A stretch of DNA of 64,000 bases from Paragordius varius (lineage: Eukaryota > Animalia > Nematomorpha): contig OZ176052.1 in assembly GCA_964247055.1 (NCBI GenBank), positions 7,316,001-7,380,000 of the forward strand, given 5' to 3'. The position numbers were made by a program, and so were the translations under genes. This document shows positions 7,097 to 15,755 of the stretch, piece after piece. Position 1 is the stretch's first letter; the number at the start of each line of letters is the position of its first letter. Below the pieces are notes generated by a model. The model was not told the origin of the DNA, searched no databases, and was given only the letters and a program-made list of their open reading frames with translations.

Positions 7097-10000
7097 ATGT
7101 CTTGTTTATGGGGTGGACGCTTTAATCATACAACAAACCAAATTTTAAATAATTTAAATTCTTCGATCGAGATCGACAAAAAACTATGGGAATATGATAT
7201 CAAAGTAATGTGTGATATTATATAATAGGGTAGCAAATCATATGCCAATTGTTTGAAAGATGCAAACATTATAACTGAAGTAGATAATCAAAGTATTCAA
7301 ACTGGTTTGGATACTATTTTTGATGAATGGGTAAATGGAAGTTTCATTATTAAAACATCAGACGAAGACATTCATACTGCACACGAAAGGCGTTTAAAAG
7401 TTAATTTCCGAATGTAATTTACGTTGCTCGAAACAAATTTTCATCAATTCATAAAAATAATATTAAATAGATCCTTCAATAATATTGATTGGAAATAAAT
7501 CTTTTGAATAATTTTTTAGGAATTGATTGGGGCAGAGATAGGCGGCAAGTTGCATACTGGCCGTAGTCGAAACGATCAAGTAACTACGGACGTTAAATTG
7601 TACATAAATAATGTTATTGGTCCAAATTTGCTAGACTCGCTTTGCACCTTATGTTATAATTTGCTTGTGAAGGCCGAAAAACTCTTACATATTCCCGATC
7701 TCTCAGCTACTAATCCACCTGATTTAAAATTTAATGGTGACTTAAACAATACAAATAACAAAAGATTATTGATGATACCTGGATATACACATTTACAAAG
7801 AGCTCAACCCGTTTTATTTTCTCATTGGCTCCTGAGTTATGCATGGGCCTTTTATCGCGATACTGCTAAATTGGACACAATACTAAACAACCAGCCTTGG
7901 GGCTTAACTACGCTAACGTTAGGGAGCGGAGCCATTGCTGGAAACCCGTTTAACATTGATCGTCAAAGTTTGGCCGCTAACCTTGGTTTCACTCATTGTT
8001 CCATGAATAGTATGGATGCTACGGGCGACCGAGATTTTATAAGTCGGTTATTGTTTTTTTTACCTGTGTATAAAAAGCATTTAAGATAAAAATTATCATA
8101 TTAAAACGAGAATTCCTTTATATATTTGTGGGAAAATTATTTTTTTATTTCCTACCTAGGTCCTATTGGAAATGGCCTATTTATAATTGTTTTGATTTTG
8201 TATTCAATATGGAAAGCTTATCAAATAATGTTACACATTTATATGACATAAATTGACAAATGAATATTTTTATTCATTTGTATGATCATTTTTTTCATTT
8301 CCCACCCAGTTGACTTATTGTACTGGTCAGCTTTGGTTAGTGTTCACTTAAGCCGTCTTTCCGAAGATTTGATATTGTATTCTAGCAAAGAATTTGGTTA
8401 CATCGAACTAGCTCAAGAGTTATGGTAAATTATTTTGCAAAGTGCTTTTACCAAATATTATTTTAAGATTAATACATGCAAATTTTTGATGAGCCTAACT
8501 TGACATGATATATAAATATTTTTACTTTTAAAAATACTAATTTGGCTAAATGCTATTATCAAATGATTTTTAGTTTAAAATTAATCTATGCAAAGGTTTT
8601 TTTTATCTTTTTTAACTACTTAATAATAACATTTTTAATTATTATATATCACAATATTTATTCTATTTTTTTATTTTAATCATAGTATACTTAAAAAGTC
8701 CTAGTTATTTTAAAATAAATTTGATTTTTGTTAAATTCAAATAAATTAATTAATAAAATAATTATCATCACTTCCACAGTACTGGAAGCAGTTTAATGCC
8801 ACAAAAAAAGAACCCAGATTCGCTCGAAATAATCCGTGGCAAAGCGGGCACCATAATTGGTAATTGTAATGCTATGTTGATTGTTGCCAAGGGTCTCCCC
8901 TCCACCTACAACAAGGATTTACAAGATGATAAAAAATTGCTGTTTGATTCTTGTGAAACTACCGATATTTGTGCCCGACTTATGGCTGCTATCATAGATA
9001 CTTTTGAGGTATTTAATTTAATACTCTTTTTATATATTGGCTTGGGTCTGACAGGTTATGCATGCATTTATTATTGAAATCATACTCTTTATTTGGCCAA
9101 CAAAGTCCTATTGCCACCTCCCCGTGGTGTTGGCTGGGGCATGAAAATGCGCTAACGGCAAAGGCCAGTTTTCTAATGATCTGTAAAATCATTAGTTGTA
9201 CACAAGGGCATGTGATTCGTAAAAAATTGCCTCAATAAACCATGAAGTATAATAATATGAATATGAAAGAACACTAAAACCTTATCAACATCTCAAATAA
9301 CAATAATAATTTAACTTATAATAATTATTTTGATAATAATTCCTATTTACACTTTTATACACTATATTTTTTTTGATATATACTTTGAATAATAAAAATT
9401 ACCAAAATAACTATGAAAATAAATAATTCCGTTAATAATAATAATAAAACAGTTCTGAAATTTGCCACATGGAATGTCGGTACTCTAGTTAACAAAATAT
9501 TAATGGTAACAAACACTCTTAGCCATAACAATATAGATATATGTTGCATCCAAGATGCCAGAATGAAAGGAGAGGGATTGAAAAACTTAGACGATTATAC
9601 ATTGGTCTATAAAGGAAATGACAAGGTACAAGGTGGTGTTGCGATTTTCATTAAAAACATCTATCGTGATAACATAATTGATGTAATAAGACATAATCCA
9701 AGAATGATTCAAATAAAAATATTGATGAATGATAATGTAATAAATATAGTTTTAACTTACGCACCACAATCTGGTCTAAGCGAAACATCAAAAAACGAAT
9801 ATTGGGAAGGCCTCTATGATTTGATGAAAAAAACTTCTTCTAGCGAACAAACTTTTGTTGGTGGTGATTTTAATTGCCATATTAATAATGATAGTAATGA
9901 ATACCATGGCGTGCATGGTGGAAATGGCGTTGGGGCCCTCGATAAGATGGGCGAGAGTTTGCTAGACTTTTGCATTGCAAATCAACTAATAGTCGCAAAT

Positions 10001-13000
10001 ACCCATTTAAAAAAAAACCAACCAGCATATAACATATAATTCCGGTGACCACTCATCTATGATAGACTTCATATTAATTCCAAAAAACATTAGGAAACAT
10101 CTAACCATCAAAACTTACTATCAATTCTCTTACCAACACAAGCTAATAACAGCATTTCTAATCATTGAGATAATCCGTAAGACCGCATTCCAACATCAAA
10201 AAATAAATAAAGCAAAGTTAAAGGATTCAAAATTATTAACCAATTATACCAAAAACACAGAGTTACATATACCTGAACGAAACAATGTTGAAACTCTATG
10301 GAAAAATTTTAAAAGCACAATTCTAACAGCTGGAAAAAAACATTGTGGTTTTACTAAACCAATGAGGTAACGGAAAAGCTGGTGGTGGAAAAAAGAAATA
10401 AAACCATTGTTGCGTGAAAAAGGCGAAGCATATAAAAAATGGAAAAGTTCCAAAAATAATGATGATAAAAAAGTTTATGATGATAAAAAAATGAGAGGTC
10501 CAAAAGGCCATTCGACACGCTATGAATTAAAAATCCGTTAAATTCGCTGAAAGTTTAGAAAAAGACTTTAAAAACCAAACGATTTTTAAAAGACTCAAAA
10601 ACCTTAACAATAGTAATAAAGATGTTGAAACCATAAAATGTATTAAAGATGATAATGATAATATAATAACGAATCCCTCGAAAGTCAAAGAAATTTGGAA
10701 AACGAACTTAGAAAAACAACTCAACCAAGTAAACCCGACCAAACGATTTAGCATGGTTTCACCAGTAGCTGGGCCCATACAAGAAATCACCATAGATGAA
10801 GTCTCAACTGCAATCAATAAATTAAAAAGTAACAAAGCTCCAGGCCCAAGCAGCCTTTCAGTCGACCTCATTCGACCCATCAAAAACACTGCAGAGTATC
10901 TGACAAAACTCTTTAACCAAATAATAATTACAAACCAAACTCCCAGCGATTGGAAGAACAGCATAATAATCCCCATTTATAAAAATAAAGGCGATCGACT
11001 AAAAACATCGTCCTACCGACCTTTAAAACTTCTGGAACACACACTGAAAATATTCGAAAATATATTAGAAAACAGGCTGAGAAAACATATAAACATAGAT
11101 TCGAATCAGTTTGCATTCCGTCCAAACAGTAGCACAATAGATCCCTTGTTTATCCTAAGACGCTTACAAGAAAAATATCTGGAAAAGAAACAAAAGCTAT
11201 ACCATGTCTTTGTAGATCTGGAACGTGCGTTTGGCCAAATACCACGCACCGTAATTCAATGGGCACTACGTAAAAAGGGAATAGAAGAACAAACTATACA
11301 AATTTTATTACTACTCTATAAAAATACAACAACCAACGTTAAAACCAATATTGGCAATACAAACAATTTCCCAACAAACGCTGGACTACATCAGGGTTCA
11401 GTCCTAAGTCCACTCCTTTTTATAACTATAATGGATGCGGCAACGCAAGACATAAGAAGTGAATGCCCTTGGGAAATGTTATTCGCCGACGACCTCGTGA
11501 TAATGACACGATCATGGGATCAACTGGTAAATACATATTCCAAGTGGAAGAAATGCCTTGAACAATATGGAATGATCATAAACGCCACAAAAACAAAAAT
11601 AATGATAACGGGTGAAAGTGAAACGCCCAGATACCCCTGTTCAGTAAGGAAGTCAAATTCCATTAAATGCATATCATGTCAAATGTGGGTACACAAAAAG
11701 TGCTCTAAAATAAAAGAAAAGTTAACAAATGTAATAAATTTTAAATGTTTAAATTGCTTAGACCCAAGCAATAATAATTTTAATCGACCAAAGCTACTTA
11801 ACATTGATGGACATGACATCGAATTGGTTGACTCTTTCGTATACCTAGGAGATGTCATTACATCTCAGGGAGGCCCACAAAAGGCTATCAAAAGAAGAAT
11901 ACAACAAGGTTGGATAAAATATAATCAGTTAAAATATGTTTTCCAAAACAAAAATGTTAACAATCGTAATAAATGGTATCTTTACAAGGTAGGAATAAGA
12001 CCTGCTCTTACCTATGGTTCTGAAACCTGGGCATTAAACAAAACAAATCAAACAAAACTCCTAACCAGTGAGAACCGAATACTCAAAAGCTGCTTTCGCA
12101 CACCAGAATTACCAATTTTCATTAAACAAACCGATAAAATCGATTATATAATTCAAACTAACAGATTGCGTCTATACGGTCATACTCAGAGAAGAGACGC
12201 CACCCATCCGTTAAAAACTGTTGAAAACATTAATGTTGATGGCAATAGAAGAAAGGGACGACCACTCTTTTCTTATAATGATAATATAAAAATGGACATG
12301 AATCAAAGTAGCCTTTCCACAGAACAATGTAAAGATCGTAACTTATGGAGGAAACTACTTTGTGGATACAAAACTCCGAATATGGAGTCCTAAAATTATC
12401 CATCCATACTCTTTATTTAAGTCCATTTTTCTGCATGCCCTTGCAAACGAGCCTTACATGAATGTATTTAGAAAGTATTTATAACCACTTTGGGCTTTTG
12501 AGTCCGCTGTAACTTTTATTGGTCCTACAACCTAGAAAATTGACTTAGTAAGCTAACGAATTTTTTTCCGCCACCAAAACTAAAAATTATAAAAGTCCTT
12601 CCCGTTGATTATCATTAGTGTTGATTTGTAAAAGAGGTTAGTACGCTAAAACTTTCATAAAATGATTATATTCGGCGTAGCAACATATAGGGTTAATATC
12701 TACCGCCATAGAATTTTTTGGGTTGCACTGCGCGCTTTAAATTAGTTACTAAATATCGATTAAATAAATAATGGTATAAACTTTATTTTAATTTTAAAAA
12801 TTGTTAATTTAATATCTAATCATCATTCATTTTTAACCTATTAAAGTTTATTTATTGACTATTTTGTTTAGCAACATATATATGCATATTTTAATTGCCT
12901 TGGTATGACTATGAGATAAGACCTAACCCATATCTACTGTTTTTGTCATTAGATTTGGATAATACAATGTTTGGGCTTACATTTTTATACAGGTGGTTTT

Positions 13001-15755
13001 TTTTTCAATATAAGCGCAGAATATCAATACTATTGTCAATTATTTTCTGAAGCCAATTATGTCGTATTGTTTTGTTTATGATCATTACTTTAATGCATTG
13101 ATTCTTATTTGGTTCCCCCCTTTAACTCTTTTGATAATCTCTCGGTGAAGTATTCAACAATTTTCCTTTGCGTCAAAAAATATATATTTCCAATTAATAA
13201 AGGTGTTATGCAAATCTGAAAGATACTTTATTTTTATATCATAATATTCTGTGTTATATGCAAATGTGAAATACATACCTTGGTTATATATCATTACTTT
13301 CACCGTTATTTGAATTGTATTATTTTCTATATTTTTTGTGTAATATGTAAATATTATAACCTTTGTTACTTAAAATTTTATTGATATAATGCAAATTATG
13401 TACAACTAAAATTACTATATAAACCCTAAAAAAACCAAATAAAGAATTCAGTTCATTTCACATTTCTTATATTATCTCCTCCTTTATCTTATAACATTGG
13501 TGGCAATTCGAGTACCGAACTAATCTAACAACTAATCTAACACAACAGTGGAACCTCCGGGTTCCAAACTCGGATGGTGGAGATAGAGTCCAAAGTGCAA
13601 CAACCATGACAATGTCAATTGCCAATATCACCAGCATGTCCATGAAAAAATATAATGATAATACCATTTATAGCAATGGTAATAATTTTAATCGATCACA
13701 ACAATCAAAACCTCGGACACATTCGCGCAAGGATTATGGGAGTGTTCATAAACAAATGTCCCGCCTGGAACCGCAATTGCAAATGCGGAAAACCCAACCA
13801 CTTCGCTAATGTAGATCAAAAAAACACTGCCAAAAATATGTTCAACCGCCAGTGCACTGAAAGCGAACGGGTAAGAATCTATAGCAACTTTGGAATCATT
13901 ATCAACAAATGGCTGGGGAGGACTCCCACATCATTCAACATTTGATGGATGGGTAAGTAAGATTGGCGCGGACAAGCTTGTAATAAGATTGATCGGTAAG
14001 ACGCCTACCTCCCCAGGCCGAGCTAAAGCTACACCCTCGACGATTTCAACAATAAGAGGATGTGTCAGTTACAAAAAGGACACAGTTAAGATTCTGACAC
14101 ATCCTCTTATTGTTGAAATCGTCGAGGGTGTAGCTTTAGCTCGGCCTGGGGAGGTAGGCGCTGGACCAGTTTAAAAGAAATGGTCTAGGGTGGCATGAGG
14201 CAGAGATCAAATGAAACACGTCGACACACATAACATAGGATGTTATCTTTCAAACCAAGATTCGTCGACACACCGCCTACTTAACGACACCGGTCACTCA
14301 AAAAAGTAGTAAGGATAACATTAATAGCAATAATGACAATATCAATGTAAATCCGCACGAGCGTCGTTACCCCGAGAGAATTCGGCGGAAGCCGGTCCGG
14401 TTCTCTTAAGGGGGAAGTGATGTTATGCAAATCTGAAAGATACTTTATTTTTATATCATAATATTCTGTGTTATATGCAAATGTGAAATACATACCTTGG
14501 TTATATATCATTACTTTCACCGTTATTTGAATTGTATTATTTTCTATATTTTTTGTGTAATATGTAAATATTATAACCTTTGTTACTTAAAATTTTATTG
14601 ATATAATGCAAATTATGTACAACTAAAATTACTATATAAACCCTAAAAAAACCAAATAAAGAATTCAGTTCATTTCACATTTCTTATATTATCTCCTCCT
14701 TTATCTTATAACAAAAGGTTAATTACGAAGCCTGTCAAAAAGCATTGTCCCCTGATATGTTAGCCACTGATATAGCCTATTATCTTGTGCGAAAAGGCGT
14801 AAATATTTTTGTTTTTATTTTTTATTTGCTTTTTTAGAAACATTCATTTTTTGTCGTTTTTAGGTTCCTTTCAGAGATGCTCATCATTGCGCTGGTAAAG
14901 TAGTAAGTTATGCGGAATCGATAAATAGTCCATTAGATAAACTTAAGCTTGAAGATTATAAAAGAATTAGGTATGTATTGGTTTTTTTGCATTTTAAATA
15001 TCATAAGCGTTTAAATGGGTTTTTTGAAACATTTACATGAATATTATGGGATTTGTTAATGATGAAAGTGAAATTTATTATCGAGTATCCTACCCAATAT
15101 TAGTAGTATATTTTTTGAGATAATTATATTTGCATATATATTTCATCTAATTTAAGCCGAAAAAAACTAAAAATTAATTTTATTTATTTTGTAGTTAGTA
15201 TGTCATATATAAAGTAACGAAGGTTAAATTCGTCGAGAGATAAAAAATCAATTTAAAAAGAGATACTTTATATATATATATTATAATTTGGGGGAGACGC
15301 AAACTTTTAGATACAGTGAAAAAATCATGGTTAGCAAACGCTATGTAAGTATTAATTTATGCGAAAAACAAAATGCGCCAAATAGTTGTTTATCAGTATT
15401 GTTGTCTTATTAAAAAGGAGTTAAGTGCCTAAATTTTTTAAAATTTATTTAGATTGATAATTTGCATGTAAAATGGATAAAAATATACAATGTAACTCCA
15501 TTTATATTTAGTTTTTGAGGTTACCTAATATCGGCGTTTTAAATTAATTAAGCGCTTTGTCAAATTTCATAAATGTGATCATATAAGTACTTATTGATAT
15601 ATTATAGCCCCCAATTTGATGCTGACATTTTGGACATATGGGATTATGAGAGGAGTGTAGAACAATACACTGCAATTGGCGGGACAAGTTCACAAAATGT
15701 TAAATTGCAAATCGATTATCTCAAATCATGGCTACGAAAATATCTTAAAATATAA
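7097..15755 (+). CDS. ASL: Argininosuccinate lyase, 8 exons, 493 aa
   Basis: join(7097-7204,7229-7399,7520-8042,8310-8424,8780-9008,14718-14798,14864-14970,15608-15755). All junctions are GT-AG and phase-compatible. Motifs: [47 protein letters not shown], signature [47 protein letters not shown]. Confidence 0.95.
9095..12404 (+). mobile_element. Full-length RTE-like LINE (APE + RT, with a Cys-rich finger inside RT) in ASL intron 5; ORF disrupted
   Basis: 14-bp TSD CATACTCTTTATTT at 9081-9094 and 12405-12418. APE motifs: [23 protein letters not shown] motifs: [28 protein letters not shown]. The C4/PHD-like segment reads CISC..WVHKKC..FKCLNC. The 3' tail is ATCCATCC. Lesions include a frameshift in the A9 run near 10010 and a stop at 10368-10370. 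Confidence 0.92.
13204..14713 (+). mobile_element. Young non-autonomous 1510-bp Gypsy/Mag-derived LTR element (TRIM-like)
   Basis: Two 293-bp TG...CA LTRs (13204-13496, 14421-14713) appear identical by eye. 5-bp TSD AAAGG at 13199-13203 and 14714-14718; PBS TGGTGGCA at 13498; PPT AAGGGGGAAG just before the 3' LTR. The 924-bp interior has a gag zinc-knuckle remnant ([19 protein letters not shown]) and an integrase-tail remnant ([12 protein letters not shown]). Confidence 0.95.
14002..14160. repeat. Perfect 67-bp inverted repeat with 25-nt loop inside the LTR element
   Basis: 14002-14068 (CGCCTACC...GTGTCAG) is the exact reverse complement of 14094-14160 (CTGACAC...GGTAGGCG). Confidence 0.95.

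Follow-up and report, generated by a model that had tools for sequence, protein, structure and literature searches.

The sequence examined here is a 64,000-nucleotide stretch of the Paragordius varius genome (assembly GCA_964247055.1, contig OZ176052.1, positions 7,316,001 to 7,380,000), referred to below as the window. It is AT-rich (~29% GC) and contains the gene encoding argininosuccinate lyase (ASL). A long terminal repeat (LTR) retrotransposon occupies the end of ASL intron 5. The 5-bp target-site duplication (TSD) that flanks it, AAAGG, straddles the intron-exon boundary, with four bases from the 3' end of intron 5 and one base, the G, from the start of exon 6. As a result, intron 5 has been lengthened by 1,515 nt and exon 6 keeps its AG|G junction. 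An initial annotation had placed the element on the exon 6 acceptor, with the TSD as the splice junction itself. This placement is correct to the base, the junction having been set by alignment with human ASL.

The ASL gene and the element on its exon 6 acceptor

The ASL gene and the region of intron 5. Coordinates are those of the window.
7097-15755, + strand: ASL gene, 8 exons, assigned from domain matches, matches to ASL structures in the PDB and a frame count.
7097-7204, 7229-7399, 7520-8042, 8310-8424, 8780-9008, 14718-14798, 14864-14970 and 15608-15755, + strand: ASL exons.
8780-9008, + strand: exon 5, residues 1-75 of which align to human ASL 279-353; the adjoining donor, at 9009, is GTATTT.
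9009-14717, + strand: intron 5 in its present form, 5,709 nt, containing a long interspersed nuclear element (LINE) and the LTR element; defined by the sequence and the homology-set junction.
14718-14798, + strand: exon 6, 27 codons (81 nt), the start of ASL_C2, followed by the donor GTAAAT; assigned from a domain match and a PDB match.

The ASL exons were searched singly and the joined set was used only to count frame and stops. Single exons matched Lyase_1 and then ASL_C2, in an order collinear with solved ASL structures. The joined exons are in frame over 493 codons and the sole stop is terminal. The last residue of exon 5 corresponds to residue 354 of human ASL. Residues 4-27 of exon 6 align to human 358-381, and its first residue corresponds to 355. 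Since exon 5 ends and exon 6 starts at residues 354 and 355, the 9008|14718 junction is gapless and in phase 0, and the AG at 14716-14717 is the acceptor.

The seven ASL donors are GTAATG, GTTAAT, GTCGGT, GTAAAT, GTATTT, GTAAAT and GTATGT. They are degenerate, as the initial annotation had stated, with G at +5 in two of the seven and at +3 in none. Intron 1 (7205-7228, GTAATG...ATAG) is only 24 nt long.

ASL is single copy in the genome; exon 3 and both flanks of the element each occur once in the assembly (110.6 Mb in 44 contigs). Neither an empty allele nor a second ASL copy was found in the 44 contigs. There is consequently no haplotig for comparison. The pathway partner, argininosuccinate synthase (ASS), is present elsewhere in the genome. 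Its match (G000:C5:5692766-5693315) includes two TAG codons within the matched stretch, probably marking an intron.

The LTR element in ASL intron 5.
13199-13203, + strand: upstream TSD copy AAAGG, holding the old acceptor AG (13201-13202) and preceded by native intron.
13204-13496, + strand: 5' LTR, 293 nt, TG...CA, with TATATAA at 13416-13422 and AATAAA at 13438-13443.
13497-14420, + strand: internal region, 924 nt, lacking pol and carrying gag and protease/reverse transcriptase (RT) remnants, from a piecewise match to 4.6-kb elements.
14002-14160, + strand: inverted repeat with perfectly matched 67-nt arms, the second of them at 14094-14160, and a spacer of 25 nt.
14408-14417, + strand: polypurine tract AAGGGGGAAG, 3 nt ahead of the 3' LTR.
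14421-14713, + strand: 3' LTR, 293 nt, with AATAAA at 14655-14660.
14714-14718, + strand: downstream TSD copy AAAGG, containing the acceptor AG (14716-14717); exon 6 begins with G14718.

The element is 1,510 bp long (13204-14713). Its two LTRs start TGTTA, end TAACA and do not differ at any of their 293 positions, bearing out the suggestion of a recent event. TATATAA and AATAAA are present in both. A primer-binding-site (PBS)-like TGG (13498-13500) lies 1 nt past the 5' LTR; no tRNA gene was found within the 64-kb window. The element is in the sense orientation with respect to ASL, as previously proposed, because the TGG follows the 5' LTR and the tract AAGGGGGAAG precedes the 3' LTR. No Pfam domain was found in the short open reading frames (ORFs) of the interior. 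Of the inverted repeat, the other copies examined have the first arm and the spacer but no second arm. The second arm is therefore a private inverted duplication, which may have arisen, for example, by snap-back while the element was being reverse transcribed.

Misplacement of a repeat in ASL by the assembler would produce a false insertion. We consider this scarcely credible. The TSD is a clean 5 bp, the flanks are unique in the genome, and the ASL copy has private features, namely the extra inverted-repeat arm and its LTR end (described below).

The LTR element is not the only transposon in intron 5.

9090-12400, + strand, ends approximate: non-LTR retrotransposon (LINE, ~3.3 kb) with three broken ORFs, identified from the ORFs and from Exo_endo_phos and RVT_1 matches.

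This LINE is in sense with ASL and begins ~80 nt past the exon 5 donor. It encodes an endonuclease and an RT, with a Cys/His-rich stretch after the RT. When positions 9020-9400 were used as a query, the repeat began ~70-90 nt into it, and other copies of the LINE were 96-97% identical. The LINE is an older passenger of the intron than the LTR element. Since a broken LINE in the sense orientation was already there, ASL had tolerated a long, transposon-filled intron 5 before.

An active Ty3/gypsy family and its target sites

Junctions between the polypurine tract and 3' LTR of the family number 43 in the genome, and matches to the LTR are many more. Copies fall into two size classes, of ~1.5 kb and ~4.59 kb. 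In L042, a 4.59-kb copy, ORF 1 matches Retrotrans_gag (weakly), aspartyl protease, RVT_1 and RT_RNaseH, and ORF 2 matches Integrase_H2C2 and rve. The order of domains, gag-PR-RT-RNaseH-INT, is that of Ty3/gypsy elements. The ASL element matches L042 and two further copies (L043 and L049) in the LTRs, in gag and protease/RT pieces, and across the final ~120 nt ahead of the 3' LTR. With other 1.5-kb copies, the match extends over the whole element, at 80-92% identity. This combination of a piecewise match to the 4.6-kb form and an end-to-end match to the short copies identifies a non-autonomous deletion derivative. Thus, as judged from its sequence, the ASL element is a member of a non-autonomous, internally deleted Ty3/gypsy subfamily, presumably mobilised in trans.

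Of the LTR pairs examined, six are identical, and most of the rest reach an identity of at least 97.5%. The identity of those six pairs indicates that the family is active. Copies are each flanked by their own TSD, although L037 and L036 depart from this. L037 (1.5 kb; G000:C5:12597680-12603480) has LTRs that are 100% identical and mismatched flanks (ATGTG versus GTTGT), which may reflect inter-copy recombination or conversion between LTRs. The flanks of L036 (G000:C5:382003-387803) share just 4 bp in register (GAGT), not 5.

The short copies resemble TRIM-like and other internally deleted non-autonomous LTR retrotransposons (PMC4558846, PMC3281118). Like them, they are short, have LTRs, a PBS-like site and a polypurine tract, and lack pol; they are also present in multiple copies with their own TSDs and point to mobilisation in trans by an autonomous partner. 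The ASL element differs from a classical TRIM in being 1.5 kb long, in retaining gag and protease/RT remnants, and in deriving from a resident 4.6-kb family.

The element and one TSD copy can be read as an intron. The GT consists of G13203 and T13204, the AG of A14716 and G14717, and the span is 1,515 nt. The initial annotation gave these coordinates correctly (13203-14717) and stressed that removal of the span restores the original sequence. The special meaning attached to this does not stand. For any TSD-flanked insertion, and in every register, cutting out the element with one TSD copy restores the original sequence. LTRs start with TG, so any TSD ending in AGG gives a GT...AG register. This is the origin of the register in ASL, where the LTR starts TG and the TSD ends AGG. 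Two other insertions, L024 and L014, yield the same GT...AG and AG|GT reading away from any recognisable host exon border. Hence, the 'perfect GT...AG intron' is an arithmetic by-product and not more than expected by chance. A rough estimate, assuming ~10^5 acceptors in 110 Mb, is that ~4 in 10,000 random LTR insertions would give such a case. One such case genome-wide is therefore unsurprising.

The initial annotation also suggested an introner-like, self-neutralising insertion. As a strategy of the family, this would mean that copies prefer, or survive at, AG|G sites, where the TSD and the LTR ends turn them into removable introns. LTR-derived introners do exist in other organisms (PMC12130899). 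We surveyed 26 clean TSDs, one from the ASL element and 25 from others among L001-L050. The family has at least 43 copies; 26 of these were covered, together with a small number of solo LTRs. Location at a host exon border was judged by ORFs and repeat content, not by gene models. The 26 TSDs are varied and GC-richer (~40%) than the genome (29%). When aligned, the sites share a palindromic preference, TA(N)[5 bp](N)TA.

Base preferences at the 26 aligned sites.
Position -3: T at 19 of 26.
Position -2: A at 18 of 26.
TSD position 3: A at 16 of 26.
TSD position 5: C or G at 19 of 26.
Position +2: T at 14 of 26.
Position +3: A at 21 of 26.

This pattern is an ordinary weak integrase signature and not a splice signal. 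The general form of the proposal thus fails the test that the initial annotation had itself set for it. Measured against raw trinucleotide frequency, AGG is nominally enriched within the TSD (P = 0.016), and it occurs in the TSD plus the next base in 4 of the 25 other copies (P = 0.007). Conversely, when the base preferences of the site itself are taken as the reference, the excess is gone: TSDs ending in AGG (NNAGG) occur in 2 of the 25 (L024 and L014; P = 0.19). We rejected the AGG enrichment as evidence of targeting on this ground, and because the sites do not fall in host exons.

The four other AG|G-type sites all lie in or beside repeats.
L014: TSD ends AGG; within an antisense LINE ORF.
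L024: solo LTR, TSD ends AGG; ~100 nt from a LINE fragment.
L027/28: AG|G-type site; flank in a repeat with 844 candidate copies.
L006: AG|G-type site; flank in a repeat with 2,477 candidate copies.

The LINE family interrupted by L014 is the one also found in ASL intron 5. By the same ORF and repeat assessment, no recognisable host exon border coincides with any of the other 25 copies, and most are in other repeats or in non-coding DNA. The introner pattern, with many copies that each form an intron in unrelated host genes, is thus not seen among them. Furthermore, 33 of 35 LTR copies of the family have an AG 8 nt from their end, which would spoil an acceptor formed in this way. We conclude that a family-level strategy is very improbable. 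Within this incomplete survey, the family does not target splice sites and the ASL insertion is a one-off.

Two acceptors and the fate of ASL transcripts

Exon 6 now has two candidate acceptors. The old one (13201-13202) has an upstream pyrimidine fraction of 0.50 and an AG-free zone of 54 nt. For the new one (14716-14717) the pyrimidine fraction is 0.73, in agreement with the pyrimidine-rich LTR end noted earlier, and the nearest AG is at -51, leaving 51 nt AG-free. The last ~50 nt of the 3' LTR thus make up both the pyrimidine tract and the AG-free zone upstream of exon 6. By these features, the new acceptor would be at least as good as the old one.

The AG found 8 nt before the end of most family LTRs is absent from both LTRs of the ASL element. 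Their shared end (CTTATAACA; 13483-13496 and 14700-14713) occurs in only these two LTRs genome-wide. Were the usual AG present here, it would lie 12 nt ahead of the true acceptor, and its use would add 10 nt to the exon and shift the frame. Loss of the AG could be a reverse-transcription error in the same event, followed by survival because the allele splices. It could also be a coincidence of ~6%.

We favour the following account, to which, taken whole, we assign a probability of roughly 0.55. A non-autonomous Ty3/gypsy element of 1,510 bp was recently integrated by the ordinary integrase of its family. The 5-bp staggered cut chanced to fall across the boundary of intron 5 and exon 6, four bases on the intron side and one on the exon side, and repair of the stagger duplicated AAAG|G, giving two acceptors. 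The old acceptor now has native intron upstream and an LTR downstream; the new one has the pyrimidine-rich LTR end upstream and exon 6 downstream. Correct ASL mRNA could still arise by direct 9008 to 14718 splicing. This is the likeliest route because exon 6, which is short (81 nt) and has its own donor, adjoins the new acceptor. The old acceptor and the polyadenylation signals of the LTRs would probably divert some transcripts. On this view the allele is tolerated or hypomorphic, not an adaptation. For the structural and family-level parts taken alone, our confidence is high.

Several observations weigh against this account. The old acceptor is intact and retains its native branch region. An AATAAA in the sense orientation lies 235 nt downstream of it, and another is in the 3' LTR. 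Such an arrangement is the classic way in which intronic LTR elements truncate host mRNAs (PMC1331978). Given that the LTRs are identical, selection may not yet have acted, and the sequenced animal could be a heterozygote for the insertion. In addition, the description of the insertion as a one-off derives from 26 of at least 43 copies, with exon borders judged without gene models.

One rival reading is a loss-of-function or strongly hypomorphic allele. Exon 5 would be joined to the LTR through the old acceptor, with all of its native upstream sequence, and the transcript would end at the LTR poly(A) signal or be degraded. If the old acceptor were used, the reading frame would stop after 13 codons. 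The AATAAA, which is conserved in 33 of 35 family LTRs, would provide a ready-made terminal exon. Mouse mutations caused by intronic ETn and IAP elements follow this course, and of 16 ETn cases all but one have the element in sense (PMC1331978). With 100% identical LTRs, such an allele could be too young, or heterozygous, to have been purged. Conversely, ASL is single copy and fully intact, its partner ASS is present, and intron 5 already tolerates a LINE in the sense orientation. The new acceptor also looks equal to any in ASL, and this copy alone has no competing AG close to its LTR end, which suggests that compatibility with splicing acted as a filter. On balance, severe loss of function is possible but somewhat unlikely.

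The same correct mRNA could also be made in two steps. In this scheme, recursive splicing, exon 5 is first joined at G13203 and the recreated donor (GAG|GTGTTA) is then spliced to 14717, leaving a zero-length exon as at Drosophila ratchet points. An AG|GT is indeed present at 13201-13204. Furthermore, with ASL donors so degenerate, and G at +5 in only two of seven, GTGTTA is not obviously worse than they are. Against this, its G at +3 has no counterpart in the seven ASL donors. Ratchet points are described as places in long introns where an acceptor directly abuts a working donor (PMC8605326). The ASL site arose by accident in a very recent insertion, as its identical LTRs show. The AG|GT at two other copies, neither of them at a recognisable host exon border, argues in the same direction. 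The step is superfluous for a working gene, since the duplicated acceptor is enough to account for continued splicing of exon 6. We regard recursive splicing as improbable.

Relation to known systems and significance

The copia insertion in Drosophila white-apricot is an intronic LTR insertion that disturbs the host mRNA. In mouse, intronic endogenous retrovirus insertions (ETn/IAP) truncate genes and are nearly always in sense (PMC1331978). The ASL insertion is like these in being a young, sense, intronic LTR element with LTR poly(A) signals and a potential for aberrant splicing. It differs in that the element is on the acceptor itself, with a TSD that rebuilds an acceptor beside the exon.

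Splice sites supplied by TSDs are a hallmark of introners, and LTR-derived introners, including solo LTRs, have been published (PMC12130899; reviewed in PMC11282704). The likeness is that one splice site comes from the element end and the other from the TSD, and that removal restores the coding sequence (PMC12130899, PMC9860276, PMC11282704). At the level of sequence, both splice sites of the ASL copy have these origins. Conversely, introners are many copies, each a new intron in the exons of unrelated genes. The ASL case is one copy that lengthens an existing intron, and the 25 other family copies are not in host exons.

The resemblance to Drosophila ratchet points, or zero-nucleotide recursive sites (10.1101/006163, PMC8605326), is the juxtaposed AG|GT within an intron. 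The ASL site differs from them in its weak donor half (GTGTTA), its origin as a recent accident, and an intron of just 5.7 kb. Taken together, the ASL case shares the sequence logic of introners and ratchet points but lacks the family-wide pattern of introners. It is a new case of an event of known type, in which an ordinary retrotransposon has inserted very recently at an unusual position.

A more far-reaching proposal can be made only tentatively. The insertion may be neutralised jointly by the duplicated AG|G, by an LTR end that has privately lost its competing AG and, perhaps, by a usable AG|GT recursion point, so that the allele makes correct ASL mRNA. More broadly, the weak donors found here may let TSDs often neutralise insertions at splice junctions. 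If that were so, such insertions would form a natural series for the study of splice-site choice and of the first step of intron lengthening or gain.

The analysis further brings to light an active Ty3/gypsy family that has a 1.5-kb derivative mobilised in trans and that clearly prefers palindromic target sites. Moreover, ASL offers a natural experiment. Identical acceptors lie 1.5 kb apart in a single-copy gene, one with the native branch region and the other with an LTR pyrimidine tract, and two sense poly(A) signals are between them. RNA from carriers could reveal how a 3' splice site is chosen in an animal with degenerate donors, and whether acceptors rebuilt by a TSD rescue genes.

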